Assembly (NCBI GenBank): GCA_002269645.1
Contig: NIVC01002720.1
Location: 82,878 to 146,877, forward strand
DNA: 64,000 bases
DNA from: Macrostomum lignano
Taxonomy: Eukaryota
Direction: 5' to 3'
The position numbers and the translations under genes are program-made. The notes beneath the pieces are model-generated. The model ran no database searches and had not been told where the DNA came from. It saw only the letters and a list, made by a program, of their open reading frames with translations. Of the stretch, positions 33,386-63,104 are shown one piece after another. Position 1 is the first letter of the stretch; the number at the start of each line of letters is the position of its first letter.

Positions 33386-33916
33386 GCAAGGCCATGTCCT
33401 GGTCACATGTAAAATTACTTTACTTTGATCCAAATACTAAATGTACATACGGCAAATTGGCATCAGGGAGGCGATGTTTACAGTGAGCAAATATAATCCT
33501 CAATAATCGACCACTGAGAATGGTACAACTATTCGCCAGTGTGCAAATACGAGTGAACATATATTTTCTTTTTCAAGGCTAGTTTGTAAAACCTGTTTAC
33601 AGAGACAATAACTGATTGCCTGTCGGTTTTGTGTCAATATACATCAAATTTTATCCAGCAGATAATTAGATCTATCACGCAGTGAGACATTTTATTGGAA
33701 GTCGCTCAGCACTGCACAAGCCAATCAATCTACTTTGCTTTACCGGTATGGTTTTAGCGACTGTTTAACTTTGCTCAGCAAACACACCTGGTCTGTGTAC
33801 TTTATTTGCACTTCCAGTATAGACATATCTTTACTTAGTTACTTGTATATATTGGCTTCATACAGTTAAAGAGCCAGAATTCAGCAGCCAAATCCAATCA
33901 AATCATCAAACCAACT

Positions 33917-36691: not shown

Positions 36692-38059
36692 CATCAATAG
36701 ATTCACCACGAATTTCTGCTACTAGTAGGTATGGTCTAGAAACCATATAAATTGATTATTTAAACTTTTTAGCCAGTTTAATTAGTGTATTTAAAATTGT
36801 GCAAAAATGTGCATTTAATTTCAATGATAACAGTTTACTAAACTTATTGTTCTTTGTCTACGTTCTAAACGTCTTACCGGCAAGCTATATATTTATTTAG
36901 TATTCTCTAACCTAGGAATCTAGTCTAATAAATAAATTGTTTAAACATGACGATTTTTCAAATCCATGCAAAAAAATAAAATTGCCCGACTCTCTCGCTC
37001 GCGCTATATTATACGGCCTAATTATATTATTTTATTATACTATAGGCCCTAGCCCCAGGGCCTATTTGTTGTCTTATTTAAGTACAATGCCTTATGAAAG
37101 TTTAAAGTACTATCCAACAGATGATAGGCCCTAAATTTGCTGCGAAGGGAACCCCTTTAATTCATTTTAGAAATTCTAAAAAACATTGTTTACAGTTGAA
37201 GCATTTTTTTCTATTTGGATTTCATTTTGCAACTAAGTCTAGAATTTAAGCTTTAAGATAGACATAAAACAGAGTATATACTATAGACACATTAGGATGA
37301 AAATAGATTGATAATCACTAGGACTGGGGCCTAGTGGATAACTTTGATAACTTGATAGATTACTGTTTAGGCCTATTCTTTATTATAGGGCCTATGACTT
37401 TCTGTACCTATATCATCTGTGATAGGCCTAACTATTAGAAAATTAGAAAAAGAATAAATTTTTCATACATTTCTATGGCTTTTTCCTAAATACAAATGGT
37501 TTAAAACCAAGATTGCCATATACCAAGATGGCTAGGCCTACAACAATATTGAATCTTTATTTTATCTATCTTTCTCTAGTAGGGGGGGGGGGGCTATTAA
37601 TTAGCAACTTAATAACTTGCCATATTAATTATTATATTTAATCAATCATATTCATAAACATTAATACAATAATAATAGGTTTGAAACTAATTACCTATAA
37701 TATAAACACCTTAACAGTAGAACTACCAAGAGGGAGGGAAAAATTTCCCCCCCCCCTGACAATTTTTTTTGCTGCGCCGGAACGGAGCAACGCAGGCACA
37801 CGAAATTCAAGAACACGGGCTAACTTCTTGTTGCGCACCTTCTCAAACAAGAATCAAGTCGCCAACCCTCCGGACCGTCGAGATATTCGACGATTCTGCC
37901 AGAAAGTCGGATTTTTCCCATAAGCGCTAGTGTATTCAGTACACCCCTGTGCGCCAATTAGCACTGCGCCTCAGTGCAGCCTTGCCAAGTCTCCAAATTT
38001 CATCAGCACGTCGACCAAATGTGTCTGCATCAGCTCTGACTTCGTTGGTTACTGGCCTT

Positions 38060-41000
38060 TGTAGTGTAGTTCAGTGCGATGTACGAGCGTACAATATTGG
38101 CGCGCAAATATTATTAGTCACGTGTTGCAATGTATTACGTAAGACTCACGCGCACTTACTCTTCACATATATAAATATACTTGCAGGGCAAGTCGGCCCA
38201 TTTCTAAGATTCTTCGTGCACTCGCAAACCCTCCGATTTTGTCTGAGTCACTACATGGCGTCGCGAGCAAACTATTGACTGATCATCACTCTCTAACCCA
38301 GCGCGGTTCCAGCCACACAAACATGGCCCAAGCTTTGCAACTCACTGCACCAGATGCATTTGATATCGATAGCGATCCACTCACACGAGCCCAGAGATGG
38401 AAGACTTGGGCACGGAGGTTCAATAGCTACATTCGCGCTGCTGGCATCACAGATGCGACACAACAGCTGGAGTTGCTGGTCTACACAGCGGGAGAGAAGT
38501 TGGAAGACTTTATGGAAGACAACAGTGTTCAAAAAGGAAAATCTACAAACGAGCTCATCCAAAAGCTACAAGAGATCTTCGACCAGAAAAACAGCGTCGT
38601 CTTCCTCCGGTACCAATTCGAGACCTGCAGACAGGGGGAGGGGGAGTCCATCGATGCGTGGTACCATCGGCTGCGCAAGGCCGCGGATCAATGCGAATTC
38701 GGAGAACTACGGGACTCTCTCATCAGGGACAAGGTGGTCGCCCACTACCGATCGGAGAAGATCAGAAGGGAGCTCCTTCAGCTGAATGATATCTGTCTAG
38801 CTGACGTACTGAAGCGAATCCGAACAAGGGAAGCTGCGGAGCAACAGGCTCAGGCCATGGAAGAAAACAGCTCAGGTGGCGCCGCCGCCATGACGACCGC
38901 GAACGTGGCTGCGCTAGGCCCACCCCGAGCACGACCGTCGCAGCCATTCAGAAGGGATCCTGCAATGAAGGACGGTGGCATCAGCTGCGAGCGCTGCGGA
39001 CGGCCGGGTCATCGAACGTGCGAGGCTGCTAGAGACAAGGCATGTCGACGCTGCGGTAAGATTGGCCATTTCGCCCGGGCATGTCGGGGAACGTCCAGAA
39101 TACCCGTGAGAGCTGTCAACGAACCGGACGATCACTCCTACGGGCAAGTCGAATATCTGCAGGACAAATCCACTGAGCACGAGCTTTTCAGCCTCCGAAA
39201 TAGCGGATCAGCATGGACTCAAGCCACCGTCAACGGATTCAAGACAACCCTGCTTATCGACAGTGGAGCGGCCTGCAACATCATCGACAGGGAGGCCTTC
39301 GAAAGGATGCCACAGAAGGCCAGGCTCCAAGCAGCCAGTGATCGGGTCTATCCCTATGGAAGCCAACAGCCACTGAAGCTGCTCGGCAAGACCGACCTAC
39401 AGGTCAGCGTTTTCGGTTGCCAGGAGACGCTTCCGTTCCTGGTGCTGGACGGAAAGGGTGCTTGCATAATAGGCCGCAGGAGCGCGGAAGACCTAGGAGT
39501 TCTGCGAGTCGGCCCGGAAGACAAGGCAGCGTGTGAGCTACGCTCGGAGTGTCCGACTGACAGGCTGCTAGCCGGCGTTCCAAAAGACCTTCGGCAGTCC
39601 CCAGGTGCTCCATCTTTAGACGAAATCCTCAAGGAAAATGCACAGGCCTTCGACGGAATCGGCTGTCTTAAGAACTACGCAGCCCGCATCTTCCTGGAAG
39701 AGGGCGCAAGACCAGTGTGCCATCCACCATCAAGAGTGCCAATTCACCTCGCTCCAGCAGTGGACGCCGAGCTCCAGTACCTAGAAGAACAAGGCATCAT
39801 TGAGCCAGTGGAGGGACCCTGCCCGTGGGTTTCTCGTATCGTCGTCGTCCCCAAAGAAGCTCCTGGCGAGATCAGGATCACTCAGGATCTGAGGGAGCTA
39901 AACAAGTCTGTCGTCAGGGAGCGACACCCAATACCGACCTTTGAGGAGGTAACAGTCGACATGGCAGGAGCGACGCTGTTCTCAGAGTTGGACGTCGCAA
40001 AAGCATTCTATCAAATCCCTGTGTCAGAGGAGTGCCGGCATCTTCTAACTTTTTCAACGCCTCGAGGTCTTCGGCGGCTGACGAGACTCTGCATGGGGCT
40101 ATCAACGGCGCAGGAAATTCTTCAAGGTGTTATGTCATCCGTGCTGGCTGGACTTTCAAAAGTAAAATGGATCCACGATGACATTATTGTCTATGGCCAC
40201 AGCGTGGCGGAGCATCACAACAATCTGCGGGAGTGCCTCCAGCGGCTGGCGCAGCACGGACTGACGCTCAACCCGGCCAAGTGCAAGCTGGCACGAACGC
40301 AAGTCACCTTCATGGGGATGCGATTGTCGAAGGACGGAGTCAGGCCAACCGAGTCAAAGCTAGAGGCAGTTAATGCATTTGCAGAGCCAACGAATGTCAC
40401 GGAGGTGCGCTCGTTCTTGGGACTTGTCAACTACCTGGCCGCATTCACCCCGAGGCTGGCGGACCTGGCAAAGCCGCTGCGCAACCTGACAAGGAAGGGC
40501 CAGCCCTGGGCATGGGCCGATCTGGAAAGACAAGCCTTCAGCGACATCAAGTCTCAAATCGCGTCAAGTGGCTCTCTTGCCTTTTTCAACCATCGCCTTC
40601 CGACGCAACTCATTGTCGACGCTGGGCCAGCGGGGCTGGGTGCAATCCTGTCACAGACACAATCGGACGGAACCAGGCGGCCCATTGCATACGCTAGCCG
40701 GACACTGTCGAACGTTGAGCAACGCTATTCCCAAACAGAGAAAGAGGCGTTGGCCGTGAAGTTCGGCTGTTTAAAGTTTCAATTCTACCTCCACGGCGCG
40801 CCGATGTTCACGGTGCAAACCGACCACAAGCCACTGGTTGCTCTGTTCGGCAGCAGTTCGAGACCCCCTCCGAGAATCGAAAGGATGGCATTGCGCATTC
40901 AGCATATGAAATTCACAGTCGAGTACCAGCCGGGCCCGCTCAACCCGGCAGACGTGCTCAGCCGACAGCCACTGCCGACACCCGCACCGAATGTGGGCGA

Positions 41001-42704
41001 AGAGCTGGATGCACTTTCCATCGCCGCTGTTGTACAGGCGGCCGTACCAAATGCGCTGTCACTGACCAGCGTACAGAACAGCTCGCAAAAGGACGCAACA
41101 ATTCAAGCGACGATTCGCGCCTTAGAGACAGGGCGGTGGAGCCTGGAGTCAGCAGAACTGCGGTCGCTGCATGCGCTGCGTCACGAACTGTCGGCAGTGG
41201 ACGGGGTGCTCCTACGGGGCCAGCGGATCATCGTCCCGGTGGCGCTCCGACGGCTTGTACTGGATCTAGCGCACCGGGGGCACCAGTGCACACGTAAGAC
41301 GCTGGACCGGCTGAACATCAAGGTCTGGTGGCCAAGGATGCAACTGGAGACGGAGCGCTTCATAGCCACGTGCCGGGCCTGCCTGGCGACCTCGCATGCC
41401 GCTGACGTGACTGCATCACCGCTAAAGCCGACGCCCATCCCGAAGGCGGCCTGGCTGACGCTCGGGCGGATCTGCTAGGACCCATTCAAGGCAGCATGCT
41501 GCTAGTCTGCGTCGATCAATACTCCCGATTCCCCGAGGTGGAGGTTGTCCAGACCACGACGGCTGAGGCGCTAATCCCTCGACTGAGGAGTTCATTCGTC
41601 CGGTTTGGAATCCCTCAAACGTTAGTTACTGACAACGGCCCACCGTTCTCTTCAGCCCAGTTCAAGAGCTTCCTGGACAGCTACGGAATTCGGCAGCGCC
41701 TCATCACACCGTTACATCCACAGGCCAACGGCGCCACCGAGCGTTTGAATCGTTCCATCAACAAGGTGGTGCGCGCTGCGATCGCACAGAAGCGCGACTG
41801 GAGAGCGGCCCTTGACGAGTGGCTGCTGGCCTATCGGTGCACGCCTCAGCGAACAACTGGACGGGCGCCTGCCGAGCTCCTCATGGGTCGCGTGCTGAAC
41901 GACTCCATCCCGTCGGTCAGACCGTCGAGACCGGTGGCCATCGCAGACCGGCAGCTTCGGCAGCGCGACGCACTTCGAAAGGCGCAAGGCAAGCTCTACA
42001 CAGACCGGAAGCGACTGGCGAGACCGCACAAGCTCAAGGTTGGCGACACAGTGCTGCGGCGGCGACTGAATCCGCTCAAGGGAGACACGCCGTTCGAGTG
42101 GGACCCCTGGCTCATCGAGGAGATCAAGGCGGACTCGGCGACGATACGACAGGGTGCCAGAGTTTGCAGGCGGCACTGCACCGACCTAAAGCGAGTGGCA
42201 CCGGAGTCCGAGCCTGACAATCTGGGCGAGCTGGCAGCGATGCCGCAACCGGAAGTGAATGCGCCTCCGCCGCAGCCAGCCGCAGGCGAGCGAGCGGCCT
42301 CGCCCATTGCGTTGCGGCCACATCCCCGGGCGGCGAAGGTGAACGTGAACTACAAGGCTTGAAAAAGGTTTTTGTTAAACGGTAGCATCTGATTTTTTGT
42401 ATTTTTTGCTGGACTTTTGCTAAAATTGTAACAGAATGAAATTTAACAAAAACAGATTTTTTAAACCCAACTTTAAAAGTTTGCTTTTAAGCCGTATTTG
42501 AGGAGAGATGTAGTGTAGTTCAGTGCGATGTACAAGCGTACAATATTGGCGCGCAAATATTATTAGTCACGTGTTGCAATGTATTACGTAAGACTCACGC
42601 GCACTTACTCTTCACATATATAAATATACTTGCAGGGCAAGTCGGCCCATTTCTAAGATTCTTCGTGCACTCGCAAACCCTCCGATTTTGTCTGAGTCAC
42701 TACA
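38060..42704 (+). mobile_element. Full-length Ty3/Gypsy LTR retrotransposon (possibly Mag-like)
   Basis: 196-bp LTRs TG…CA (38060-38255, 42509-42704) with one difference seen; 5-bp TSD GCCTT; PBS-like TGGCGTCGCG at 38256; PPT GAGGAGAGA at 42500-42508. Confidence 0.97.
38323..42362 (+). CDS. Gag-Pol polyprotein (gag with two CCHC-type knuckles, protease, RT, RNase H, integrase) with one frameshift near 41465
   Basis: CRRCGKIGHFARAC, LIDSGA, WIHDDIIV, IVDAG…EKEALAVKFG, HRGHQ…C..C, VTDNGPPF, NGATERLNR. The order PR-RT-RH-INT defines Ty3/Gypsy. One extra G at ctcggg|cgg would fuse ORFs 38239-41478 and 41496-42362. Confidence 0.93.
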
Positions 42705-42709
42705 GCCTT

Positions 42710-45330
42710 CACCGAGACGGAGCTTCTAGACCTTCAACAGGTGGCACCAGGTGACTATGAACACCTTGATGCGAATTTCTGGAGTTTCACCGATCAAGCT
42801 TCGACAGTAGGCAAGCTTCAACTGCCGGACACCCTCAGCTAGTCTCCTGAGCATTCCGTCATCATCCCGACACCGTCGGCTCCTTCAACAGGTGGCATCA
42901 GGTGACTATGGACGTCCTTTTGCAACTATGTCAGGTCTTTCTTATCAAGCTTCAATAATGAGCAAACCTCAACCGACGGACATTGTCAGCTAGTCTCTCA
43001 AGCATTCCGTCATCATCCCGACGCCGTCGGCTCCTTCAACAGATGACACCAAGTGACTATGGACACCCTGATGCGAATTTCTCTAGTTTCGCCGATCAAG
43101 CCTCGACAGTAGGCAAGCCTCAACTGCTGGACACCTTCAGCTAGTCTCCTAAGCATTCCGTCATCATCCCGACGCCGTCGGCTCCTTCAACAGATGACAC
43201 CAAGTGACTATGGACACCCTGATGCGAATTTCTCTAGTTTCGCCGATCAAGCCTCGACAGTAGGCAAGCCTCAACTGCTGGATACCTTCAGCTAGTCTCC
43301 TAAGCATTCCGTCATCATCCCGACGCCGTCGGCTCCTTCAACAGATGACACCAAGTGACTATGGACACCCTGATGCGAATTTCTCTAGTTTCGCCGATCA
43401 AGCCTCGACAGTAGGCAAGCCTCAACTGCTGGACACCTTCAGCTAGTCTCCTAAGCATTCCGTCATCATCCCGACGCCGTCGGCTCCTTCAACAGATGAC
43501 ACCAAGTGACTATGGACACCCTGATGCGAATTTCTCTAGTTTCGCCGATCAAGCCTCGACAGTAGGCAAGCCTCAACTGCTGGACACCTTCAGCTAGTCT
43601 CCTAAGCATTCCGTCATCATCCCGACGCCGTCGGCTCCTTCAACAGATGACACCAAGTGACTATGGACACCCTGATGCGAATTTCTCTAGTTTCGCCGAT
43701 CAAGCCTCGACAGTAGGCAAGCCTCAACTGCTGGACACCTTCAGCTAGTCTCCTAAGCATTCCGTCATCATCCCGACGCCGTCGGCTCCTTCAACAGATG
43801 ACACCAAGTGACTATGGACACCCTGATGCGAATTTCTCTAGTTTCGCCGATCAAGCCTCGACAGTAGGCAAGCCTCAACTGCTGGACACCTTCAGCTAGT
43901 CTCCTAAGCATTCCGTCATCATCCCGACACCGTCGGCACCTTCAACAGGTGGCATCAGGTGACTATGGACGTCCTTTTGCAACTATGTCAGGTCTTTCTT
44001 ATCAAGCTTCAATAATGAGCAAACCTCAACCGACGGACATTGTCAGCTAGTCTCTCGAGCATTCCGTCATCATCCCGACGCCGTCAGCTCCTTCAACAGA
44101 TTACACCAGGGACTATGGACAGCCTGATAAGAATTTCTCTAGTTTCGTTGATCAAGCCTCGACAGTAGGCAAGCCTCAACTGCTGGACACCTTCAGCTAG
44201 TCTCCTAAGCATTCCGTCATCATCCCGACACCGTCGGCACCTTCAACAGATGACACCAAGTGACTATGGACACCCTGATGCGAATTTCTCTAGTTTCGCC
44301 GATCAAGCCTCGACAGTAGGCAAGCCTCAACTGCTGGACACCTTCAGCTAGTCTCCTAAGCATTCCGTCATCATCCCGACACCGTCGGCACCTTCAACAG
44401 GTGGCATCAGGTGACTATGGACGTCCTTTTGCAACTATGTCAGGTCTTTCTTATCAAGCTTCAATAATGAGCAAACCTCAACCGACGGACATTGTCAGCT
44501 AGTCTCTCGAGCATTCCGTCATCATCCCGACGCCGTCAGCTCCTTCAACAGATTACACCAGGGACTATGGACAGCCTGATAAGAATTTCTCTAGTTTCGT
44601 TGATCAAGCCTCGACAGTAGGCAAGCCTCAACTGCTGGACACCTTCAGCTAGTCTCCTAAGCATTCCGTCATCATCCCGACACCGTCGGCACCTTCAACA
44701 GGTGGCATCAGGTGACTATGGACGTCCTTTTGCAACTATGTCAGGTCTTTCTTATCAAGCTTCAATAATGAGCAAACCTCAACCGACGGACATTGTCAGC
44801 TAGTCTCTCGAGCATTCCGTCATCATCCCGACGCCGTCAGCTCCTTCAACAGATTACACCAGGGACTATGGACAGCCTGATAAGAATTTCTCTAGTTTCG
44901 CCGATCAAGCCTCGACAGTAGGCAAGCCTCAACTGCTGGACACCTTCAGCTAGTCTCCTAAGCATTCCGTCATCATCCCGACACCGTCGGCACCTTCAAC
45001 AGGTGGCATCAGGTGACTATGGACGTCCTTTTGCAACTATGTCAGGTCTTTCTTATCAAGCTTCAATAATGAGCAAACCTCAACCGACGGACATTGTCAG
45101 CTAGTCTCTCGAGCATTCCGTCATCATCCCGACGCCGTCAGCTCCTTCAACAGATTACACCAGGGACTATGGACAGCCTGATAAGAATTTCTCTAGTTTT
45201 GCCGATCAAGCCTCGATAGTGGGCAAAAATCAACTGCTGGACATCCTCAGCTAGTCAGTCAAGCATTTAGCCATCACCCCGACGCCGTCGGCACCTTCAA
45301 CAGGTGGCACCAGGGGAGTAAGGACACCTG
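42710..45330 (+). repeat. 151-bp satellite, left arm of the foldback (~17 units, A and B subtypes)
   Basis: Period 151 (43021, 43172, 43323); homogeneous run of A units followed by alternating A/B units. Confidence 0.95.
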
Positions 45331-45629
45331 AGCGTGATTTTTCATCATGCTCTTAACATTTCTGAAGCTCTCAAAATTTTTAAAGCGCAGACATTGCTAT
45401 AGTTAAGCTTGAACTCATGTTGCTGTATATTTATATTATTATTACACATACTTTTATGCATACGAGCTACATACATATTTTATTCGAAAAGCTGTTTACT
45501 TTATTCAACTATAATATTGAACCGAATTTTTATGCAGAAAGGGTTATGCTTATAAGAAGCCAGTAAATTAAATCCGTTTTTTCATTTTATAATGATTCAG
45601 AAATGTTAAGAGCATGATGAAAAATCACA

Positions 45630-46745
45630 CTCAGGTGTCCTTACTTCCCTGGTGCCACCTGTTGAAGGTGCCGACGGCGTCGGGGTGATGGCTGAATGCT
45701 TGACTGACTAGCTGAGGATGTCCAGCAGTTGATTTTTGCCCACTATCGAGGCTTGATCGGCAAAACTAGAGAAATTCTTATCAGGCTGTCCATAGTCCCT
45801 GGTGTAATCTGTTGAAGGAGCTGACGGCGTCGGGATGATGACGGAATGCTCGAGAGACTAGCTGACAATGTCCGTCGGTTGAGGTTTGCTCATTATTGAA
45901 GCTTGATAAGAAAGACCTGACATAGTTGCAAAAGGACGTCCATAGTCACCTGATGCCACCTGTTGAAGGTGCCGACGGTGTCGGGATGATGACGGAATGC
46001 TTAGGAGACTAGCTGAAGGTGTCCAGCAGTTGAGGCTTGCCTACTGTCGAGGCTTGATCGGCGAAACTAGAGAAATTCTTATCAGGCTGTCCATAGTCCC
46101 TGGTGTAATCTGTTGAAGGAGCTGACGGCGTCGGGATGATGACGGAATGCTCGAGAGACTAGCTGACAATGTCCGTCGGTTGAGGTTTGCTCATTATTGA
46201 AGCTTGATAAGAAAGACCTGACATAGTTGCAAAAGGACGTCCATAGTCACCTGATGCCACCTGTTGAAGGTGCCGACGGTGTCGGGATGATGACGGAATG
46301 CTTAGGAGACTAGCTGAAGGTGTCCAGCAGTTGAGGCTTGCCTACTGTCGAGGCTTGATCGGCGAAACTAGAGAAATTCGCATCAGGGTGTCCATAGTCA
46401 CTTGGTGTCATCTGTTGAAGGAGCCGACGGCGTCGGGATGATGACGGAATGCTTGAGAGACTAGCTGACAATGTCCGTCGGTTGAGGTTTGCTCATTATT
46501 GAAGCTTGATAAGAAAGACCTGACATAGTTGCAAAAGGACGTCCATAGTCACCTGATGCCACCTGTTGAAGGAGCCGACGGTGTCGGGATGATGACGGAA
46601 TGCTCAGGAGACTAGCTGAGGGTGTCCGGCAGTTGAGGCTTGCCTACTGTCGAGGCTTGATCGGTGAAACTCGAGAAATTCGCATCAAGGTGTTCATAGT
46701 CACCTGGTGCCACCTGTTGAAGGTCTAGAAGCTCCGTCTCGGTGA
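45630..46745 (-). repeat. 151-bp satellite, right arm of the foldback (~7 units, inverted)
   Basis: Reverse complement of the left-arm units, alternating A/B. Confidence 0.95.
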
Positions 46746-48199
46746 AGGCCAGTAACCAACGAAGTCAGAGCTGATGCAGACACATTTGGTCGACGTGCTG
46801 ATGAAATTTGGAGACTTGGCAAGGCTGCACTGAGGCGCAGTGCTAATTGGCGCACAGGGGTGTACTGAATATACTAGCGCTTATGGGAAAAATCCGACCT
46901 TCTGGCAGAATCGTCGAATATCTCGACGGTCCGGAGGGTTGGCGACTTGATTCTTGTTTGAGAAGGTGCGCAACAAGAAGTTAGCCCGTGTTCTTGAATT
47001 TCGTGTGCCTGCGTTGCTCCGTTCCGGCGCAGCAAAAAAAATTGTCAGGGGGGGGGGAATTTTCCCCCCCCCCTCTTGGTAGTTCGACGGGCGGAAAAAT
47101 GGCTTGGTATTCCTACTGTTAATAGGCCTACTTTTCAGCTTTTGTGCCAATTTATTCTCTATCGTTATATCTATCAAGTCTATCTTTATCAGTGTATCAA
47201 GAAGCTATTATTAGTGCCTAGCATAGGCAGTGGGAGTTTGTAGCACTGGGGTCACTTGCCCTCCCCCCCCCTAGAAAATGAGTCTATATGGTAATTTTTA
47301 GTGTTTTTTCTGATTTTAGGCCCTAATTAGTAGCTTATAAAGATACCTATGCCCTCACTTTCCCTGTGCCTAAGTGCCCCCCCCCTAAAATATTAGGCTT
47401 CGCCATCCCTAGTGCCTAGTGCTATGGTAATGATATACAAAAAAGTTAGGATAAATATGCAAAAGCCAAAAGGTATTTATTTTGTGCTAGGCTACCTGCT
47501 TTATTTAGTAGATAAATACTTATAGGTCAAGCTACAATAAAAACTAAAGCCAAAAAATGATTATAATATAATATAATTCTATTATAGCATTTATCTCCCT
47601 AATTATTCTCCTTAATTAATTCTACTACATATAGGAAATGAGTGAAATATGTAGACTTAGGCATTTTATTATTTATTTAGACATTTAAAGCTATGGCCAT
47701 CTTGGTGTATGGCCAATGGCCATCTTGGTCATGCGCCATACAAATAAGCCTAGACAAAACAATTTTTCTAATAGGCCCTCAAGAAAAAATTAAGGCATAG
47801 GTCTTATATCTTATTGAACTAGTTAGAGTTGTCTCAGAGTTGTCTTAAGATGTGTCTCAAGGTGGCCTGGTAGGTTTTTGAATCCCACTGCTGCTACCAA
47901 TGTTGTACCTGTGCTTCTTGTGCTGTCTAGCACAGTGATTTGGGCTCTCCGTCTTCTCAACTGGAAGCCTTCTATTAGCTCTTAGTAGTGTAGGTAGTGC
48001 TGCCACCAGTTCCTTCAGGTCTTGGCTTTTGATGAAGTGAGCTTCCCATCAGAAGGATATAACAAGGTCAACAAACAGCACAACATGCAGATTTGCAGCT
48101 CAACGTAAAAGACATCTTGTTAGCAGCACCTGCCGGGCTTGGTTGGTAGATGGGAAGGCCAAGTTAGCCTCTCAAAAGTTTGAGGTGGGGCTTTAGTAG

Positions 48200-48467
48200 C
48201 ATACATGCGGAACCCCCCCTCCCGATTTACATTAGCTATACAACTTACTTTTTGACCAAAAATGCAACTAAACTATAAGAAACCCTAACACAATTTTGGG
48301 TAAACAGCAGGAGTAACTATGACTGTCTTATAAAGGCTAAATGCCTCATCATCTAATTAGTACTATATCTGTATTCTTTAGGCTGGGCATTTTTGCGACT
48401 TATCCCTGGTCTACCACAATTTACGGTGGCCAGATTGGCCAGGTCGGCCAGCAGTTGTGCATGTATG
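48200..48467 (+). mobile_element. hAT-type MITE (CATACATG family) carrying a 28S rRNA-like core
   Basis: Ends CATACATGCGGAAC / GTTGTGCATGTATG; exact 8-bp TSD TTTAGTAG (48192-48199, 48468-48475); core at 48298-48361. Confidence 0.9.
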
Positions 48468-49934
48468 TTTAGTAGGGTCTCATTTAGACCAGTACAAGCA
48501 CATTCAGTGGACACGAATGGCACTTAGTTCAGTCAATAATGCACACGGGATCTTAGAAGTTTAGAGGCAAGCTAAGACTCCTTGATGTAAACAAGGGGGA
48601 GAGAGGTCCCATTTATAGCCGGGATTCTCCGGCACACAAGACCTCGTGACTTGTTCTATTTTTAGAACTGATGTCACTTGAGGTCTGCAGGAAGAGTGCG
48701 CCAGGGAGTGACTCAGTGTCTATTTTTAGAACTGATATCACTTTCTGCCTTAGAGAAGGCAGGGTCTGTGGGCAAAGTGCAAGGGGCCACATGACTCAGT
48801 ATCTATTTTTAGAAACATGAGTCATCTTTGCCTTAGGGAAGGCAAGGGCCCCAAGGCACATGATTCTCCCATAAATAGGACCAGCAAGTGCAGTAAACAT
48901 GTTTACTGCACTTTGAGACTCCAAGAATGCAAGATCTATCATGTGACTTGCTCACAAGATAGAGGAAAATGGGATGGGAATGAAATAGAGACAGCCCACA
49001 GCAGAGAAGCTGAGGGCTAAGAACAGAGATGCAAAAGGACAGAACAGGCCAAGTGCAGCAACAGACAGGCAAGGGGGTGGGAAGCTGATAAGCAGCAGAC
49101 AGCAACCCTGGATGAGGGCAAGGGAGACTGCTAACAAAGGGGGATGCCTAACACTAAACTAGTGACTCAAAACATTAATTTGATGATTTGGTTGAGAAAC
49201 AAATTTAACTATTACAAATTTAGCAAAATTAAATAAAGTAAATTAATTTTTTAATAAATGTCTAAATATAGTATAATAAATATTAGAGATTTAGTCTAGA
49301 AAGGTAGGGGCAAATTGAATATTTAACCTATTCCTATAATCCAATATACAAAAGAACAAATGTTCCTTCTTATTTAACAAATCAAATATTAATATACTTA
49401 TATTAATTATATAATATTATAATATTATAATTACAATAAAAGCCTATACTTAAATAGACTTTATTGAATCTTCTTTCTTCTTGTTTGTGTGCAATCGATT
49501 TTAGCAAAAATTCTTAATACTAAAGATGAAAATCATATTGTAGGTATTTCAATACTCCTCCTAGACTGTTGAACCAAAATTTATCAAACTTGCACCATTT
49601 GATTGGAAATTTTTATGTGACTATGCATGACTATTTTGATTCTTTAGATTCACAAAGTTGGCCCTTTAAAGTTGAGAAAACCTGCTTTTTGCCTATGCTT
49701 TTAGTGTATTTTTGCTCATAGTCAGAGCCAACTATGACTCGGGCCATAGACTAAAAACATCTTTGTTTGATCCTTTGTCTCTTTATTTGTATTTGTATTT
49801 GTATATGTTGAAATCCTTCATTTTGTTGATCCACATGACATGAAAATCTATTTGTCCGTTAAATTAACTGGCTTTGTTATGCCGAAAAGGAAAAGAAACC
49901 TAAATCACAGAATAGTAGACTTGCGAAGCAACAA

Positions 49935-50688
49935 CTGGGGGATGCTTGCTGTGGGCTGCTTGCTGTCTGGGGGATGCTTGCTGTGGGCTGCTTGCTGTCT
50001 GGGGATGCTTGCTGTCTGGGGATGCTTGCTGTCTGGGGGATGCTTGCTATCTGGGTATGCTTGCTGTCTCGGGATGCTTGCTGTCTGGTGGATGCTTTCT
50101 GTCTGGGGATGCTTGCTGTCTGATGGATGCTTGCTTTCTTGGGGATGCTTGCTATCTGGGGGATGCTTGCTATCTGGGAGATGCTTGCTATCTGGTGGAT
50201 GCTTTCTGTCTGGGGAATGCTTGCTATCGGATTCTTGGATGGATGCTTGCTATTTGGGGGATGCTTGCTGTCTGGGGGATGCTTGCTGTCTGGGGGATGC
50301 TTGCTGTCTGGGGATGCTTGCTGTCTGGGGGATGCTTGCTATCTGGGTATGCTTGCTGTCTGGGGATGCTTGCTGTCTGGTGGATGCTTTCTGTCTGGGG
50401 ATGCTTGCTGTCTGATAGATGCTTGCTTTCTTGGGGATGCTTGCTATCTGGGGGATGCTTGCTATCTGGGAGATGCTTGCTATCTGGTGGATGCTTTCTG
50501 TCTGGGGAATGCTTGCTATCGGATTCTTGGATGGATGCTTGCTATTTGGGGGATGCTTGCTGTCTGGGGGATGCTTGCTGTCTGGGGGATGCTTGCTATC
50601 TTGGGGATGCTTGCTATCTGGGGGATGCTTGCTGTCTGGAGGATGCTTGCTATCTGGGGGATGCTGTCTGGGGGATGCTTTCTGTCCA
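49935..50688. repeat. 18-19-bp minisatellite (GGGATGCTTGCTRTCTGG) with a ~290-bp higher-order repeat
   Basis: About 40 copies; the variant block …GGGGAATGCTTGCTATCGGATTCTTGGATGG… occurs twice. Confidence 0.95.
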
Positions 50689-51439
50689 AGGGGTTCAATG
50701 GGAAACGGGAGTTGTTTAAGTTCCCCCCCCAAAGGGGGGCTACATGGCTAGTTTAAACTAATAGCAAAAGTTTTATAAGCAACCTATAAAAATTAAGCCG
50801 AAAAAGAAAGTTCCAGTCTTGGACTATTAAGTAAAATGGGTCCTATCATAATAGACTGATAGTTTATACTAATATTATCCCAGTTTGTTCAAGTTTCTAA
50901 ATATACGCTCATATATTTAAATATATATGTATATAATTTAAATATATGCATCTATTTCTATTAAATTTGGTTTTAATTGTATTGTATCCAATTGTATCCA
51001 TTTTTGGGATTTTGGCAGTCTAAACATAAGTTATAGTGAATGCAAGCCACAACCCCATATTCAATTCTGTGCGTAGCCATATATATTAACTTGGAGCCTT
51101 TTTCACAAAAAATTGCCTGGGTACTTTGCAAATCACACCAATGAGAGCCAACCCCCAAGGTACAGAGTGTACACGTCTGACAATTAAAAAGTCAAAACCA
51201 ATGTACACCCTGTATGAGCATACAGTATTGGCGTGCTTGTATGTGCTCAGGACTGAGTAGAATGGGCTGAATTGCCTCAGTGCTGGGTGAGAGACAATTT
51301 CGCCAAAGTTTTTGGCACCAGGATGCCCGCGGTCCCACTGCAGTTATTATTCTATTTAATATATTTGTGATTATTAAATTCTTGTTAAAAACACTGTTCA
51401 TGTTCCGCATTTGATCTCTTCAAATCACTGGCCCAAGTC

Positions 51440-52036
51440 ATGTCTCTGGCCGCCGCGCTGCGCTCCCTCTCTCTGCGTCAAGCTGCCCCCATTGCCAGCC
51501 TGTGCCCTCGCCTGCAGATCCAGCACCGGCAGCAGAGGCGCCACCTGTCCTCGCCGGCGCCCCAGCAGCTGCAGCCAGCTGGCATCGATGGCGGACCAGC
51601 CGCCACTCAGTCCTCGCCAGCTGTTCGCGACTTGGCCCAGCGAATCTGCCAGCTGAGCCTCCTGGAGGTTGCCGAGCTCAGCCGCCAGCTGCAGTCGGAT
51701 CTGGGCGTCTCGGCCCAGCCGCCCCTGCCTGCCGAAGCCTTGAAGGCTCTCGTTGGCGGGGCTGCCGAGGCTGCATCAGCCGACGCGGCTGCTGATGCCG
51801 GCGCCGGAGCCGCGGTGAAGACTGCATTCAATTTGAAACTGGTGAAATTCGACGCCGCCAAGAAGGTGGCCCTCATCAAGGAGTTGAAGTCGCGCAATCC
51901 GTCGCTGAATTTGGTGCAGACTAAAAAACTGGTGGAATCGGCGCCCGCTGTGGTAGTGAACGACCTCACTAAGGACGAGGCCGAGGCGATGAAGTCCGCC
52001 CTGGAACAAATCGGAGCCACCATAGAGATTGAGTGA
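51440..52036 (+). CDS. MRPL12: Mitochondrial ribosomal protein L12 (bL12m), intronless
   Basis: Presequence-like N-terminus, LSLLEVAEL dimerisation helix, Ala-rich hinge and C-terminal domain KTAFNLKL…KKVALIKELK…LNLVQTKKLVESAP…KDEAEAMKSALEQIGATIEIE. Confidence 0.93.
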   Translation: MSLAAALRSLSLRQAAPIASLCPRLQIQHRQQRRHLSSPAPQQLQPAGIDGGPAATQSSPAVRDLAQRICQLSLLEVAELSRQLQSDLGVSAQPPLPAEALKALVGGAAEAASADAAADAGAGAAVKTAFNLKLVKFDAAKKVALIKELKSRNPSLNLVQTKKLVESAPAVVVNDLTKDEAEAMKSALEQIGATIEIE

Positions 52037-53749: not shown

Positions 53750-54859
53750 ATGGGCAATAAACAGGTCGTTGGTTCGAGTCCCAGCTCTGCCGGGTTTCCA
53801 ACGCGACGCAGTAGAAAATCTGTCCGGCCGGCGGACGCGCCGCCGCTCCGCTCGCCAGGGAAACAGCCAGCGCTCCCGACACCGCCGACGCCGCTTCTAC
53901 CCCCGTCTACTGCGCCGCAGTCGCCACTCCCGCCTCCTGCAGTACATGTGTATTTACCTCCACCATTGAATCCGAACTCGTTAAGCGTCCGCAACGACGA
54001 CTACCTCTTCCCGGACGCTGTCACTCCGGTTAAGGTGGACCGGCGTCTTGTCGACAATTACGACGTTCCTTACATTGACGATATTGGCGAATGCGACGAG
54101 CCTGAAGCCGAGTCCTGCTACTTCACCGAAGACCTGCGCTGGTCGCTTGTCATGCTGGACTCGGCGCCTCGGCTGGCGGAGGGCGAAGAATTTCCGGAGC
54201 TAGGTGAGCGTCTAGCGATTTGGTTTGGGTAGCGGCAGGGCCTTGAGTCAGGAGATACATGGTCCTGAGTCAATATATGAATTTTAAGTCATGAATTTAG
54301 GTCTGAATAAAGAAGCGCGTGTTTCTGAGTCACCAGATGTGGCTCTGAGTCACCAGATGTGGCTCTGAGTCACCAGATGTGGCTCTGAGTCACCAGATGT
54401 GGCTCTGAGTCACCAGATGTGGCTCTGAGTCACCAGATGTGGCTCTGAGTCACCAGGTGTGGATCTGAGTCACCAGATGTGGATCTGAGTCACCAGATGT
54501 GGATCTGAGTCACCAGATGTGGATCTGAGTCACCAGATGTGTCTCTGAGTCACCAGATGTGTCTCTGAGTCACCAGATGTGGCTCTGAGTCACCAGATGT
54601 GGCTCTGATTCAAGTGGATAAAATGCTTTGAGTTCCCTCTGTCAACATGCATTCTTCTGGAAAAATGTGCCAGTCAAGTAGTTCAAGCCAGAAACCGCTA
54701 TTGACTCTCTTCGATCCGTCTCCAGTCGCCACGTACGACCCCGTGTCCAGCCTGGGTGCCGTCGGTTCCAAGCGTCACCGGCTGGGACTTTTGACGCGGC
54801 TGTTCCGCGGAAACAGACGAAGACGGCGTGGCCAGCATGGCGAGGCGTCGCGAGCATGA
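53750..54859 (+). CDS. Possible two-exon uncharacterised gene (53750-54203, ~54633-54859)
   Basis: A Pro-rich then acidic ORF ends at a good donor (CTAG|GTGAGC); a minisatellite fills the putative intron as in the other genes; the only in-frame acceptor found is weak (TTTGAG). Start codon uncertain. Confidence 0.4.
54324..54610. repeat. 20-bp minisatellite (CTGAGTCACCAGATGTGGCT)
   Basis: About 14 copies, each containing TGAGTCA. Confidence 0.95.
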
Positions 54860-57490: not shown

Positions 57491-58319
57491 CTGAGGCTAT
57501 TCGTCTGGGTAGAGGTTTATCGAACTAGAGTCCTAAGTGCTGAGTCCCTTGATTCTAGGGTCAGAGACGCAGATTCTAGGGTCTGCGACGCGGATTCTAG
57601 GGTCTGAGTCACGGGTTCTAGGGTCTGAGACACGGATTCTAGGGTCTGAGTCACGGATTCTTGGGTCTGAGACGCAGATTCCAGGGTCTGAGTCACGGAT
57701 TCTAGGGTCTGAGTCACGGATTCTAGGGTCTGAGACGCAGATTCTAGGGTCTGCGACGCGGAGTCTAGGGTCTGAGTCACGGATTCTAGGGTCTGAGACG
57801 CAGATTCTAGGGTCTGCGACGCGGAGTCTAGGGTCTGAGTCACGGATTCTAGGGTCTGAGTCACGGATTCTAGGATCTGAGACGCGGATTCTAGGGTCTG
57901 AGTCGCGGATTCTAGGGTCTGAGACGCAGATTCTAGGATCTGAGACGCAGATTCTGGGTCTGAGACACGGATTCTAGGGCCTGAGACGCGGATTCTAGGG
58001 TCTGAGTCGCGGATTCTAGGGTCTGAGACGCGGATTCTGGGTCTGAGACACGGATTCTAGGGCCTGAGACGCGGATTCTAGGATCAGATACACGGATTCT
58101 AGGGTCTGAGTCGCGGATTCTAGGGTCTGAGACGCAGATTCTAGGGTCTGAGACGCGGATTCTTGGGTCTGAGACGCAGATTCCAGGGTCTGAGACGCGG
58201 ATTCTAGGGTCTGAGTCACGGATTCTAGGGTCTGAGTCACAGATTCTAGGGTCTGAGACGCGGATTCTGGGTCTGGGACACGGATTCTAGGGTCAGATAC
58301 ACGGATTCAAAGGTCTGAA

Positions 58320-61300
58320 CAAGGAAAACTTGATAACTCAGGACCGGAAACGAGCCAATTCATGGCGAAAAAAGTATGAGGCTCGTTTAAAAGCATTGTT
58401 CTATGGCCCGTCCGTATGCGCATGCTTTCAGTTGCCAATGTATACTCGTATCATATTTGACTTTTTGATAGGCACTCAGAAGGCGGGTGCAGGGTCGGTT
58501 TTCTTAAATGTTGAATATTTTTATTACATTAAGTAACCGTCGTGAAAATACACAATGGGAAAGCTGTACATGCAGCACATGTATAAGGAAACTCGAGAAA
58601 AATTTACGATTCTTTCTTCATCTGAACTACAAACAGAGAAGAAAATAACAGTCACAGAACGGGACAAGAGCTGACTATGATAAATAGTGAAGTGTTTGCT
58701 CCAGGTTCGCTCACTGTCCACTCAGCTTCAGTATTTTTCTATCGTGCACTTTATCCGGTGAAGGAGCGCTCTTTGCTCCTCGTTGAACATAACCCTTGAA
58801 GAAACAGTTGGTGAGGCGCACGCAGCATCCCAGAACATCTGCTTCAGGGAAGTAAAACTCGCCAACGGCAGCAAACAATTTGCGCACTCGCAAAGCACAT
58901 GACGGTGATCGCAGCGAAATGAAGCATCCGAAATAGAGGCAAGCAAAATTGAACAGCCACTTTGGCGGGTGCTTCAACTTTCCCCGGGAAATCATTTCAG
59001 TGAATTCACCGAGTGGGGTGTTTAAATTTTCGGCAGGATCATCACCGGCAATTTTCTCCTTTAACGTTATGTAGCCTGAAATGTTATTATTATGCCTCAG
59101 TTGTCCTTCGCCTCAGCAATCGTTATTTCCATCCAAGTTTAAGTAACACAAATGCATGCCTTACCTGCAATATAATAAACAGATGCCTTTTCGGCCATTG
59201 ATAGGCTCTCAGCTTTGACGTAGCAGTCATCGAGCGTCGAAAGTTCTTCGTCTGAAAGGGGCGTGTCGCAGCAAAGTCCTTTGTTGTGCACGAATCCATC
59301 CAGCTCTAACACTGTGTAGAGTTTCATTCGTCGGAGTCGAGCGCTGAGAAGAACTTGCTCTACTGAGATAAAGTAATTGCCTCCGCTCATTTGGCGATAA
59401 ACACCAAATTCTGCTTCCAGAGGATCACTTTGCAACTCCGCTATGAGAATGTACGTTGCACCAGATTCGCAGAGCAGTCGTTCGCATAGTTCTATGATTG
59501 CATGAATAGTGTAAGCTAATGACCTCTTCGTCTCTGACGTCAGAGATTGGTGTCTTGTTCTTCCCTTTCCACTGCGCATCTCCTCAATCGATTCGCAAAG
59601 CGCGCGCAGGAACTTGATGTTTGGATCTTGAACTGAATAGACAGCCCGTCTGTCTGGGTCATTAAGTCTAACATGAAGATGCGGGTTCTTGCAGTTCACA
59701 ATTTTCCAGAATTTCGAAATAACGTCAATGAATGCAGCTGTTCCATTCTTCCCGTCGCATTTTAGGGCGGCAGCAACGTTGTCGCAGAAAACTTGAAGAG
59801 CTAAATTGACTTTAGTCTTTTGGACATTTGTTGGGAAACACGCTTCGTATGTAATGCCTGTACGCTTAACAATGTGATCTGCTTCAGATTTATACAGTTC
59901 TACAATATCTGACCACTTAGCCGTGACGACTGTTGTAGACTTGGGCAAACGAATGGTTAGCATTCCATCAGACTCAGACTGCCAATTGTTCCGAATTGAC
60001 TTCAAAAGGTGTACAACATCATGGAGCAAAAAGAAAGTAGACTCCTGTGATTCAGATTTGCCGATCCAAGGTTTTGTCTGTTGAGCAGCAAACATCGAGA
60101 AGCACTTTCTGTTTGTGGGATGGTTGTCACACACAAGCGCTACAACGAGGCCTCCATGTTGATTGACGAGTTGAATGCACTTTCGAAGCTGATGGTACAA
60201 AAAGTCGGCGGAAAGAAGAAAAATCGGTATCAGCCTTAGAACAAATGGCTTACCGCCGAACAATGGCTTCAACATTATTGCGAGCACTGTTCGAGCAGTT
60301 TTGTTATGATTGTCTGACGCTTGGCCGAGCAGATGTTGGCACCGATAGCGAATCGATGGCTGGACATACATTTCATCGAAAATCAACACACAAGACTTCT
60401 GCTGCGGTTTCAGTTTGGCAAATGTGACCTTTACGATCTCGTGTGCATCTTTTCAGTGCCAATCTCTCCTAGACCAGCCAACTGAGTGCGTAATGTGCGT
60501 TGGTGGGGCAAAGGAAGGAGCGTCTGTGCATGCGCGTATGCAGAACTGCTAATCAGGTAAAGCAAAGCAGATTGGCGCATAGTGGCAATGTCGTATCGTC
60601 GATTGTTTGGGTGCGTTGTGGCGAACTCGAGTAGCTTCAGGATGAATGTAACCGATGTGTCCGGTACAACTCCATCGTGGTTAAAGGCAATAGAAAGGTT
60701 CTTAGATAATGCCCTCACCTCAGTTTCGACGTCCACTGTAGAGTTTTTACAACGATTTATGATAGCTTCAAGTTGCGACCAATACTTTAATGTTGGTTGA
60801 AATCCAAGCAGATCTCGAACCGCAACTGGTGAGTGTAACCGAAAGCATCGCACGGAATAGTTTGGTGAAACGAAAACTCGCAGAACCATTTCGGCATTGG
60901 CGCTTAACGAGAAGATAAACACCTCCTCTTGAACAATGGTAACAATAAGCTGATGTGCTTTGATGACGTCTGAACAGTGGATGGATGCTCGGAATTCAGT
61001 CCACGATGGCAGCGTGTCACGCTCTCGAAATTCTACTAGTTCATCTTGGAAAAGGCATCGTTCGGACAGCAGCACGCCCCTTCCCTCAGCCTGTCGACTG
61101 GCACGCACTGCAATATCCAAGCACGCATCTTAGTGTTTCGTTTCGACCCTATTTGATGGAGTGCAAATACGCTCGAATATTTGAATTAAAGCAGTAGAAC
61201 TTCACAAACCTTGTGTTTGAACGAGGCAGGACTGCGGGACTCCGTCGAAAACTGATGGTGGATGTAGCGGCCTTTCCTTTCTTCCCTTTTTTATCATTGG

Positions 61301-62134
61301 TGCATCTTGAGGCCAGTGCTTAGCACACACGCCCATGTAGTCTGTCACGGTCTAAACAACAACAAAATTGTCAATGAATTCATGTAGCCAGGCTAAATCT
61401 GATTCACAAAGCACATTTGAAGAAAGTCTTACCGTCAGTTGATTAGGCAGTGACAGCCGCCAAGCCTCTCGTTCAGTTGCATCCTTAGGAAACGAAAATA
61501 CTGCAACATTCCGATCACGGTTACTATTATAGTTTGCACAACAGAAAATGACGCTGCATTTTCTCGGCATGATATTTATTTTCAGCGAGAATAAAAGTTC
61601 TCTCTCTCAATTGCAAGTGCATGCGAAGAACTCAATTTTAAGCTCAGATTTCTTCGCTTTCGCAGCTTTGGATGGGCCATAGAACAATGGGAGATTATAC
61701 ATACGGTACTATCGTTAAACAATAAGCAAAGATCACTCGTGGCTACGCTTAGTACCGTAGTATAGACTTATTGGCACTATCGTTTAGCATACTCGACTAG
61801 AAGCATTGTTTAACGCTGAAGCGTTGTTTAACGATGTCTCAGAGAATCAGAAACGTCCTAGACTGCGCAGGTTTTGGCCATAGACATCGACAACGACAAT
61901 GACATCGACACTCTATTCCTAATGTTTTTCATGCATTGAACGTTTAGTACGAGCGTACAATACATATAAAATAAATTGTCTATGGCAAAATTTTCAATCA
62001 TCGTTAAACAATCAATCTTTGACTGAAGCGTTGTTAGTATGGTAAACCATAGTAACTATGCTTTTAAACGAGCCTCATACTTTTTTCGCCATGAATTGGC
62101 TCGTTTCCGGTCCTGAGTTATCAAGTTGTCCTTG
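58320..62134 (-). mobile_element. P-superfamily DNA transposon (3815 bp)
   Basis: 77-bp TIRs (58320-58396, 62058-62134; one mismatch) starting CAAGG; exact 8-bp TSD GGTCTGAA; encodes a THAP-domain transposase. Confidence 0.95.
58711..61570 (-). CDS. THAP9/P-element-type transposase; exons 61570-61433, 61351-61210, 61148-59165, 59075-58711; two apparent 1-nt frameshifts (~61121, ~60452)
   Basis: THAP C2CH (CSVIFC…FSFPKD…W…VCAKHW…PPSVF), LPLPHQRTL, IFDEMY, VCDNH, HDVVHLLKSIRNNW, LQSDPLEAEFGVYRQMSGGNY, YYIAGY; three GT/AG introns. Confidence 0.88.
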
Positions 62135-63104
62135 GGTCTGAATCACGGATTCAAAGGTCTGAGACATAGATTCTAGGGTCTGAACGCGGATTCTAGGGTC
62201 TGAGACGCGGATTCTGGGTCTGAGACACGGATTCTAGGGTCTGAGACGCGGATTCTAGGGTCTGAGACGCGGATTCTGGGTCTGAGACACGGATTCTGGG
62301 TCTGAGACACGGATTCTAGGGTCTGAGACGCGGATTCTAGGGTCTGAAACGCGGATTCTAGGGTCTGAGACACGGATTCTGGGTCTGAGTCACGGATTCT
62401 AGGGTCTGAGACGCAGATTCTAGGGTCTGAGACACGGATTCTGGTCTGAGTCACGGATTCTAGGGTCTGAGACGCGGATTCTAGGGTCTGAGACGCGGAT
62501 TCTGGGTCTGAGTCACGGATTCTAGGGTCTGAGACGCGGATTCTAGGGTCTGAGACGCAGATTCTAGGGTCTGAGACACGGATTCTAGGGTCTGAGACGC
62601 AGATTCTAGGGTCTGAGACACGGATTCTAGGGTCTGAGACGCGGATTCTAGGGTCTGAGACACGGATTCTAGGGTCTGAGACGCAGATTCTAGGGTCTGA
62701 GACGCGGATTCTGGGTCTGAGACACGGATTCTAGGGTCTGAGACGCGGATTCTAGGGTCTGAGACACGGATTCTAGGGTCTGAGACGCGGATTCTAGGGT
62801 CTGAGACACGGATTCTAGGGTCTGAGACGCGGATTCTAGGGTCAGATACACGGATTCAAAGGTCTGAATCACGGATTCTAGGGTCTGAGGGAAGGATTAA
62901 CAAAAGTAATCAAAATATTTTAGATTCATACCAAATATCGACGAATTAAGCCGCAATATCACTGTGAGTAGCTATTTATGGTTTTATTTACTTTTTGTTG
63001 ATCCTTAATTTGTCATCCAATTCATTTAACTGAAACAATACACTCGCATGTTATTGCACTAAATAAAAGAGATTGGTGCATAATTGCTTCCTGTAAATGC
63101 TAAG

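Follow-up and report, generated by a model that had tools for sequence, protein, structure and literature searches.

How did a piece of the 28S ribosomal RNA (rRNA) gene come to lie inside small cut-and-paste transposons of Macrostomum lignano, and why is it altered at the very positions where 28S-specific nucleases cut? The question is raised by a 64,000-nucleotide stretch (64 kb; hereafter the window) of contig NIVC01002720.1 (assembly GCA_002269645.1, positions 82,878 to 146,877 of the forward strand), which contains a family of MITEs (miniature inverted-repeat transposable elements), designated here as E1 to E4. Three of these carry a 64-nt core derived from the 28S stretch that includes the R2, I-PpoI, and Pokey target site. 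We consider it probable that the core is a neutral cargo, captured by a non-coding cut-and-paste MITE family, and that its centre was changed by one event prior to amplification.

The three cargo-bearing copies are E1 (8648-8948, 301 bp, minus strand, in the orientation opposite to E3), E2 (10987-11272, 286 bp, plus strand), and E3 (48200-48467, 268 bp, plus strand). The E3 piece (48298-48361, plus strand) is identical to 28S at 54/64 positions, and the E1 piece (8745-8808, minus strand) at 52/64, both counts being ungapped identities over the 64-nt core. The E2 piece (11094-11168, plus strand) is broken by a 13-nt insertion, TACTCCTAACTGT, at 11123-11135. This region of 28S is near-invariant across eukaryotes, and the comparison was made with the general eukaryotic 28S sequence. 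The initial annotation had described the three elements, with their terminal inverted repeats (TIRs), their 8-bp target-site duplications (TSDs), and a shared core, and had quoted the core of E3 and both identity counts; all of these were reproduced. The 28S sequence that it had given was also correct, as it agrees with the Rfam large-subunit (LSU) model LSU_rRNA_eukarya, the consensus of which reads GGGAGUAACUAUGACUCUCUUAAGGUAGCCAAAUGCCUCGUCAucUAAUUagUGAC at 2255-2310, and with a 28S R2 substrate oligonucleotide, CAAGCGCGGGTAAACGGCGGGAGTAACTATGACTCTCTTAAGGTAGCCAAATGCCTCGTC (PMC13000458). The E3 piece corresponds to approximately 2244-2307 of the Rfam model, within helices 69-71. Relative to the R2 nick (AAGG^TAGC), the segment takes in 36 nt on the upstream side and 28 nt on the downstream side; the nick is positioned by the cleaved bottom-strand pieces listed in the oligonucleotide study (PMC13000458).

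A chance resemblance, with a core unrelated to 28S, was considered on the basis of the Rfam results. In a 371-nt cmscan search, E3 matched the LSU model with 24.4 bits (E = 5.4e-4). This does not reach the gathering score of 50, which is unsurprising for a 56-nt fragment. No LSU match was obtained for E1 and E2 in a 2.7-kb cmscan search, so that the Rfam support is contributed by E3. The ungapped matches of E3 and E1, however, are difficult to reconcile with coincidence. Local alignment to a 74-nt 28S reference gave scores of 39 for E3, 34 for E1, and 18.5 for E2, whereas the best score elsewhere was 11 (300-nt tiles of the window, both strands); over these 128 kb of strand, the scores of E3 and E1 are three to four times the best background. 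Outside the centre of the piece, at least one copy retains the 28S base at every flank position where E1, E2, and E3 disagree, and only one change from 28S in the flanks (G12 to A) is common to E1 and E3. The inferred ancestor is therefore identical to 28S at 49/50 flank positions. The probability of coincidence is negligible and the idea is effectively refuted; taken together, the alignments indicate that the core descends from 28S ribosomal DNA (rDNA). The alignment scores and the LSU match likewise bear out the earlier proposal that a non-autonomous family with TIRs and TSDs captured a 28S-derived piece spanning the R2/I-PpoI site.

The homology begins at GGGTAAAC on the left and ends at TTAGT, or perhaps TTAGT-AC, on the right. 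Extension beyond the 64 nt was attempted and yielded nothing convincing, with the possible exception of the “AC” across a 1-nt gap at the right junction. Direct reading of the copies revealed that all three CpGs of the piece have been hit by CG to CA/TG transitions; the observed/expected CpG ratio of the window is 0.80. No true rRNA gene is present in the 64-kb window. Searches of the element for other RNA families by cmscan gave weak matches only. One of these, to the C/D-box small nucleolar RNA (snoRNA) snoR442 (11102-11139, minus strand, 15.4 bits, E = 8.4), was rejected as a snoRNA gene, and is attributable to the antisense strand of the 28S piece, which complements the rRNA stretch that such guides target.

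The carriers of the piece have the size, termini, and flanking duplications of MITEs. E3 has TIRs at 48200-48213 and 48454-48467, and is flanked on both sides by the TSD TTTAGTAG (48192-48199 and 48468-48475). E1 is flanked by TGCACAAG (8640-8647 and 8949-8956), and E2 by ATTATACT (10979-10986) and ATTATATT (11273-11280), which agree at 7/8 bases. The TIRs of E1, E2, and E3 are 14 nt long and of the type CATACATGCGCAAC, being perfect in E1 and containing one to three changes in E2 and E3. A TIR search revealed a related element, E4 (14501-14850, 350 bp, minus strand), with perfect 14-nt TIRs, CATACATGCCTAAC, and a perfect TSD, CCTATAAG (14493-14500 and 14851-14858). The four elements, 268-350 bp in length and 70-86% alike, thus occupy four independent sites, as judged by their four different 8-bp TSDs. 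E1, E2, and E3 are homologous over their whole length, with a mean column identity of 77% in a three-way alignment and an identity of about 79% between E2 and E3. The elements have no coding capacity, as stops break all six frames, and a chimeric query, assembled from every stop-free peptide stretch in E1 and in E3, found no protein relatives (E <= 0.1).

The left arms of E1 and E2 each contain two to three copies of a 9-nt subterminal motif, TGCGACTTA, close variants included, and the right arms of E2 and E3 contain one each, with a single orientation throughout; the strict pattern just misses the left-arm copies of E3 and the right-arm copy of E1. In E3 the right-arm motif (48394-48402, plus strand) lies within a 17-nt block, GGGCATTTTTGCGACTT, that is invariant across E1, E2, and E3. 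E4 contains six motifs of this type, in the same asymmetric layout as the other copies when its minus strand is read. Its interior is low-complexity and purine-rich, and the 28S piece is absent from it, the best local score against the 28S reference (8.5) being that of the background. The TIRs and subterminal motifs define a mobilisable family, and the 28S piece is the cargo of only one lineage, that of E1, E2, and E3. Because E4 shares the ends and the motifs without the piece, the piece is dispensable for mobility.

Differences from 28S are concentrated in the middle of the piece. Positions 28-41 read CTCTTAAGGTAGCC in 28S, GTCTTATAAAGGCT in E3 (48325-48338, plus strand), and GTCTTATTAAGTCA in E1. 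Mismatches common to E1 and E3 are found at positions 12, 28, 34-38, and 41, that is, at 7/14 positions in the centre and at 1/50 in the flanks (Fisher p = 4e-5). The interval for the Fisher test was picked after inspection, and a permutation scan statistic without a pre-chosen interval was run alongside, which gave P = 4e-4 for the placement of six or more of the eight shared mismatches within any 8-nt span, and P = 1e-3 for that of seven or more within any 14-nt span. The mismatch cluster is real, and was already present in the common ancestor of E1 and E3, the most divergent copies. The proposal that the mismatches gather at the cleavage positions is supported, and the altered state appears to be ancestral, in that it is shared by E1 and E3 and predates the split of the three sampled copies.

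The altered centre covers the I-PpoI cut (TTAA^GG), the R2 nick, and the TTAA used by Pokey. The I-PpoI cut in 28S lies at CTCTCTTAA^GGTAGC, with CTCTCTTAAGGTAGC as the recognition site. E3 has six mismatches in this 15-bp site, and has lost both the AAGGTAGC core and the TTAA, leaving no intact R2, I-PpoI, or Pokey target. In E1, a TTAA is present at a shifted position and in a different context. The TTAA in 28S is the target of Pokey (PMC3849761).

What kind of event produced the altered centre? The net change in length is zero. In a gapped alignment, the centre can be described by one or two substitutions together with two small indels, namely 2-3 nt inserted within the palindrome CTTAAG and 2-3 nt deleted beside AGG, and this model accounts for the region about as well as six to seven substitutions. 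Given the nearly equal fit, a single complex event was judged likelier than many point changes. The CTTAAG palindrome adjoins the helix-69 quasi-palindrome. The insertion in E2 is a separate one: by direct reading, its GTTACTCC reverse-complements GGAGTAAC, which lies upstream, and its TAACTGT repeats the bases just before it, a composition that marks it as a templated, snap-back-type change at this quasi-palindrome. The occurrence of an independent templated insertion at this palindromic spot marks the site as structurally prone to rearrangement, with or without a nuclease. Excision footprints of the hAT type (+6 to 8 bp) and of the Tc1 type (+5 bp) were discarded, as both clash with the zero net length change, and a piggyBac TTAA-duplication model offered no improvement in fit over simple indels (+3/-3 or +2/-2).

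The coincidence of the lesion with the cleavage sites brings nuclease attack into consideration. The centre might be the repair scar of a cut by a 28S-specific nuclease, either R2-type or homing, made on the template rDNA unit or in one of the early MITE copies; amplification would then have been open only to the version that resists cutting, while copies with an intact site would go on being nicked or filled with R2. The shared mismatches at 34-38 and 41 straddle both the I-PpoI cut and the R2 nick, and in the gapped reading the small insertion and the small deletion that flank AGG resemble the products of end joining. The second, independent templated insertion in E2 lies only a few bases away. 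The piece also retains the upstream region that is bound by the zinc-finger (ZnF) and Myb domains of R2 (10.1101/2024.11.11.623112), and R2 is on record in the flatworm Schistosoma mansoni (PMC10946416). Neither R2 nor any other 28S-specific element was seen in the window, however, and one or two substitutions would suffice for escape. Palindromes and quasi-palindromes mutate in the same manner without a nuclease, and three copies are too few to establish recurrence. A scar of this kind is, on balance, unlikely. A bolder version, in which the 28S sites of the MITEs are present or past substrates of a 28S-specific nuclease outside the rDNA in the germ line, with the E2 insertion and the altered centre both as scars, would make the family a fossil record of ectopic cleavage, or a resistant decoy that is still bound through its flanks; we regard it as very improbable.

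A different origin of the piece is suggested by the transposon Pokey and its derivative mPok in Daphnia. The family or its autonomous parent may once have resided in, or next to, the 28S hot spot, and may have acquired the sequence of that locality, perhaps along with a footprint left by a different TTAA-using element. Pokey targets exactly the same TTAA and contains internal sequence derived from rDNA (PMC3849761), and the CTTATTAAG of E1 resembles, on direct reading, a TTAA duplication minus one base. The locations of the elements argue otherwise. Each of the four insertions occupies ordinary DNA, AT-rich or intergenic, and their 8-bp TSDs are unrelated; none is in rDNA, and there is no rDNA within the window. 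The piece is internal, between the two arms, whereas transduction would place it at a terminus, and the footprint model requires as many events as the simple indel model. A past in the rDNA is therefore very doubtful as the source of the cargo.

The explanation that we prefer, neutral capture followed by a single early change, would proceed as follows. The elements would be moved in trans by a transposase that makes 8-bp duplications and recognises the CATACATGCGCAAC termini and the TGCGACTTA motifs. The 64-nt 28S segment, which sits between two arms in the lineage of E1, E2, and E3, was copied from rDNA. It most likely entered as filler DNA, at the time when an internally deleted derivative arose through abortive gap repair with a template switch onto the very abundant rDNA. 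The centre was then altered before the copies diverged, probably in one complex event, which combined a small insertion with a deletion or was a template switch, rather than by seven independent substitutions, and the segment would afterwards have decayed neutrally, together with its carrier. Ac/Ds and P derivatives contain filler DNA at their deletion junctions, which was reportedly explained by abortive gap repair (Rubin and Levy, 1997). In a 2024 review, non-autonomous transposable elements (TEs) were recorded as acquiring rDNA modules by reshuffling, and most such modules were judged to be without benefit to the TE (PMC10946416). The non-coding region of Pokey, likewise, picks up intergenic spacer (IGS), internal transcribed spacer 2 (ITS2), and other host DNA (PMC3849761). 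Filler capture fits both the modular reshuffling view of the review (PMC10946416) and the collection of host DNA by Pokey (PMC3849761). A neutral relic had been the fallback of the initial annotation, and is the reading that the evidence now favours; the piece is most likely a passively captured cargo, and a curiosity rather than a new biological system.

If the piece had a function, it might be better conserved than its surroundings. Segment identities were obtained from pairwise global alignments of the three cargo-bearing copies. Between E3 and E2, 56/64 positions of the piece are identical (apart from the E2 insertion), compared with 111/129 in the arms (Fisher p = 1.0). Between E3 and E1, the piece is again identical at 56/64 positions, without indels, compared with 88/121 in the arms, where there are also about 60 gap columns (Fisher p = 0.025). 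The E1/E3 difference may arise because the arms are repeat-rich and indel-prone. The best-conserved parts of the elements are the TIRs and the 17-nt right-arm block, as expected of sequences to which a transposase binds. On the question whether the core is more conserved than the rest of the MITE, which had been put forward as a check, the answer is thus positive for E1 and E3 and negative for E2 and E3. From these comparisons, any constraint on the cargo appears weakly evidenced and inconsistent between pairs.

These identities bear directly on the idea that the piece is a functional module, namely a dispersed, cleavage-dead 28S site that decoys rDNA-targeting nucleases or offers them a landing pad, that gives rise to small RNAs matching rRNA, or that is a conserved core of help to the element. 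In favour of it, the flanks on both sides are nearly intact while the cut site is destroyed, and the piece is somewhat better conserved than the arms in the E1/E3 comparison. There is also a precedent for a conserved domain of short interspersed nuclear elements (SINEs) on a DNA-transposon MITE (PMC6887750). E4, however, transposes without the piece, E2 and E3 display no excess conservation, the helix-69 pairing is broken (non-canonical pairs were flagged by cmscan), and few copies were seen. A function of this kind is highly improbable, and the suggested decoy, landing-pad, and small-RNA roles are unsupported by the sequences at hand.

Several observations nevertheless weigh against neutral capture as a complete account. 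The better conservation of the piece relative to the arms in E1 and E3 could hint at constraint. The “ancestral” state is inferred from only three cargo-bearing copies. A neutral origin by itself leaves unexplained both the position of the lesion on the cleavage sites and its zero net length. No signature of a capture junction, such as microhomology, was identified, and no autonomous partner with the MITE ends was found among the window open reading frames (ORFs) that were scanned.

To which superfamily would such a partner belong? The elements had been called hAT-type in the initial annotation. Their 8-bp TSDs agree with hAT transposons, yet TSDs of this length occur in further superfamilies, among them the P superfamily, in which the TSDs are 7-8 bp long and the termini start with CA(T). 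The hAT terminal consensus is said by Kempken and Windhofer (2001) to be 5'-YARNG, and all eight ends of the MITEs read CATAC, with T rather than R at position 3 and C rather than G at position 5. TSD consensus sequences of nTnnnnAn for the Ac group and nnnTAnnn for the Buster group were reportedly given by Arensburger et al. in 2011. Among the four sites, which are too few for an assignment, T is present at TSD position 2 in 2/4, A at position 7 in 3/4, and TA at positions 4-5 in 0/4. The window contains 38 ORFs of at least 150 aa, and in the 19 of them that were scanned against Pfam no hAT transposase domain was revealed. Both the TSD length and the CA(T) start of the MITEs are compatible with the P superfamily. 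Judged by termini and TSDs, “hAT-type” is a sensible conjecture rather than an established assignment, and the data are also compatible with a P-type origin.

A P-element-like transposon remnant is present in the window at 58320-62134. It contains TNP-like/THAP9-type transposase ORFs on the minus strand (59139-60389 and 60431-61120), and is bracketed by 81-nt inverted repeats (58320-58400 and 62054-62134, 98%). It is also flanked by 21-bp minisatellite arrays at 57537-58396 and 62113-62986. Its transposase (59139-61120) was considered as a partner of the MITEs and rejected, as the 81-nt inverted repeats are unlike the MITE ends.

How widely the cargo has spread was addressed by several searches. 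The initial annotation had held that the altered site was dispersed by the element; three cargo-bearing copies in the 64-kb window are in keeping with this, but the spread appears modest, as none was found in 175 kb of other M. lignano DNA. The latter comprised the DNA of GCA_002269645.1 around paralogues of the HSP20 and gypsy sequences of the window (see below), in which BLASTN detected no relatives of E1, E2, E3, or E4, the only matches of E4 being low-complexity. In the viral contigs of IMG/VR, a 21-mer from the core gave one chance phage match only, and an 18-mer from the subterminal block gave two chance matches only. Two gapped MITE-specific patterns had no match in JGI metagenome contigs, the E1/E3 peptide-stretch query found no MITE copies in Logan or NCBI assemblies, and two contigs of other organisms from ENA contained no copy.

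Within the window, three of the four copies (E1, E2, and E4) cluster within 6.2 kb (8648-14850), in an AT-rich stretch of 30-36% GC. The cluster lies beside or within a minus-strand ArfGAP-PH-BAR gene (ArfGap/PH ORF at 1183-1824; BAR ORF at approximately 9079-9403), with E1 located just downstream of the BAR exon, and probably intronic.

The nearest parallels are found among elements that are already associated with rDNA. Pokey, of the piggyBac superfamily in Daphnia, is a DNA transposon associated with the same 28S hot spot, and it too has given rise to MITEs (mPok). Pokey, too, has internal sequence of rDNA origin (IGS A-repeats and a piece of ITS2) and readily acquires host DNA (PMC3849761; PMC10946416). 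Unlike the present elements, Pokey inserts in the 28S TTAA and makes TTAA duplications, and its cargo is spacer rather than 28S coding sequence; the MITEs described here have 8-bp TSDs, lie outside the rDNA, and carry the mutated 28S target region itself. SINE28 of mammals, and the 5S modules of SINE3 and Cassandra/Ajax, are likewise non-autonomous mobile elements with rRNA-gene sequence (PMC10946416, Table 2). These are retroelements, however, and the 5S cases keep a working RNA polymerase III promoter, which explains the persistence of the module, whereas in the MITEs the carrier is a TIR/TSD cut-and-paste element and no promoter or other activity of the 28S fragment is known.

In structure, the MITEs resemble internally deleted, non-autonomous elements of the hAT (Ac/Ds) or P type, which likewise have short TIRs, TSDs of 8 bp, subterminal repeats in an asymmetric layout, and an interior that bears no relation to any transposase gene. 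Abortive gap repair with template switching is a mechanism of origin for deletion derivatives of both types. The MITEs differ from such filler-containing elements in that their CATAC ends miss YARNG, and in that the filler is a recognisable fragment of an rRNA gene. A further parallel is the V-domain SINE core on the DNA transposon MER6, in which a short module from a foreign class was spread by a MITE-like element; that module is a deeply conserved SINE domain, in contrast to the decaying rRNA gene fragment found here (PMC6887750).

The table of rDNA-derived TE sequences in the 2024 review lists 5S promoters, SINE28 (28S, a retroelement), and the IGS repeats of Pokey, and contains no cut-and-paste MITE with a 28S coding fragment (PMC10946416). 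Non-autonomous TEs with rDNA modules are already known, and the present family adds to them the case of a 28S coding fragment in a cut-and-paste MITE, the cargo being the most heavily targeted insertion hot spot of eukaryotic rDNA. If neutral, the family is a tidy example of rDNA filler capture, and a reason for caution in rDNA fluorescence in situ hybridisation (FISH) and read mapping in Macrostomum. If the nuclease-scar account were true, the dispersed copies would be a natural record of off-target activity of the R2 type, which would be topical at a time when R2 proteins are being engineered for site-specific gene insertion.

The remainder of the window is rich in repeats. A Ty3/gypsy long terminal repeat (LTR) retrotransposon occupies 38060-42705, with LTRs of about 196-200 bp and a pol that is broken between 41478 and 41496; it is 98.9-99.7% identical over approximately 4.65 kb to five copies in M. 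lignano GCA_002269645.1. The retrotransposon lies inside a foldback-like structure (37732-47072) that is delimited by 328-nt inverted repeats (37732-38059 and 46745-47072, 98%), and that also contains 151-bp satellite arrays in opposite orientations at 42705-45400 and 45575-46750. Minisatellites with periods of 18-44 nt are very dense, for example at 1-1290, 1887-3300, 4449-5600, 5888-8257, and 19395-21111, and further ones are present at 23085-24430, 32784-33475, 49911-50716, and 54239-54678. Several of them are contained in long ORFs, such as those with a Macro domain at 22774-24397. The density fits the repeat-rich genome of Macrostomum. An ORF at 51440-52036 encodes a ribosomal protein L7/L12 C-terminal domain, and is likely a homologue of the mitochondrial MRPL12. 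Exact-sequence look-ups of this protein, of the HSP20 protein, and of a 632-aa ORF gave no match in public assemblies.

An inverted duplication of 1656 nt has arms at 27222-28877 and 31065-32720 that are 100% complementary and separated by a 2187-nt spacer. Each arm contains an apparently intronless HSP20/alpha-crystallin gene, of 275 aa from the first ATG and with two HSP20 domains. The duplication is a head-to-head gene pair in which conversion took place very recently, or else it is an artefact of the assembly. An HSP20 ORF of the window shares 71% identity with a protein of Macrostomum lignano. The segment at 17238-18621 is 89% identical to a segment by the HSP20 locus on M. lignano NIVC01002601.1, while the HSP20 genes themselves are only 77% identical. 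These similarities suggest that the window may be a paralogous or homeologous counterpart of the NIVC01002601.1 region, consistent with the duplicated genome of M. lignano.

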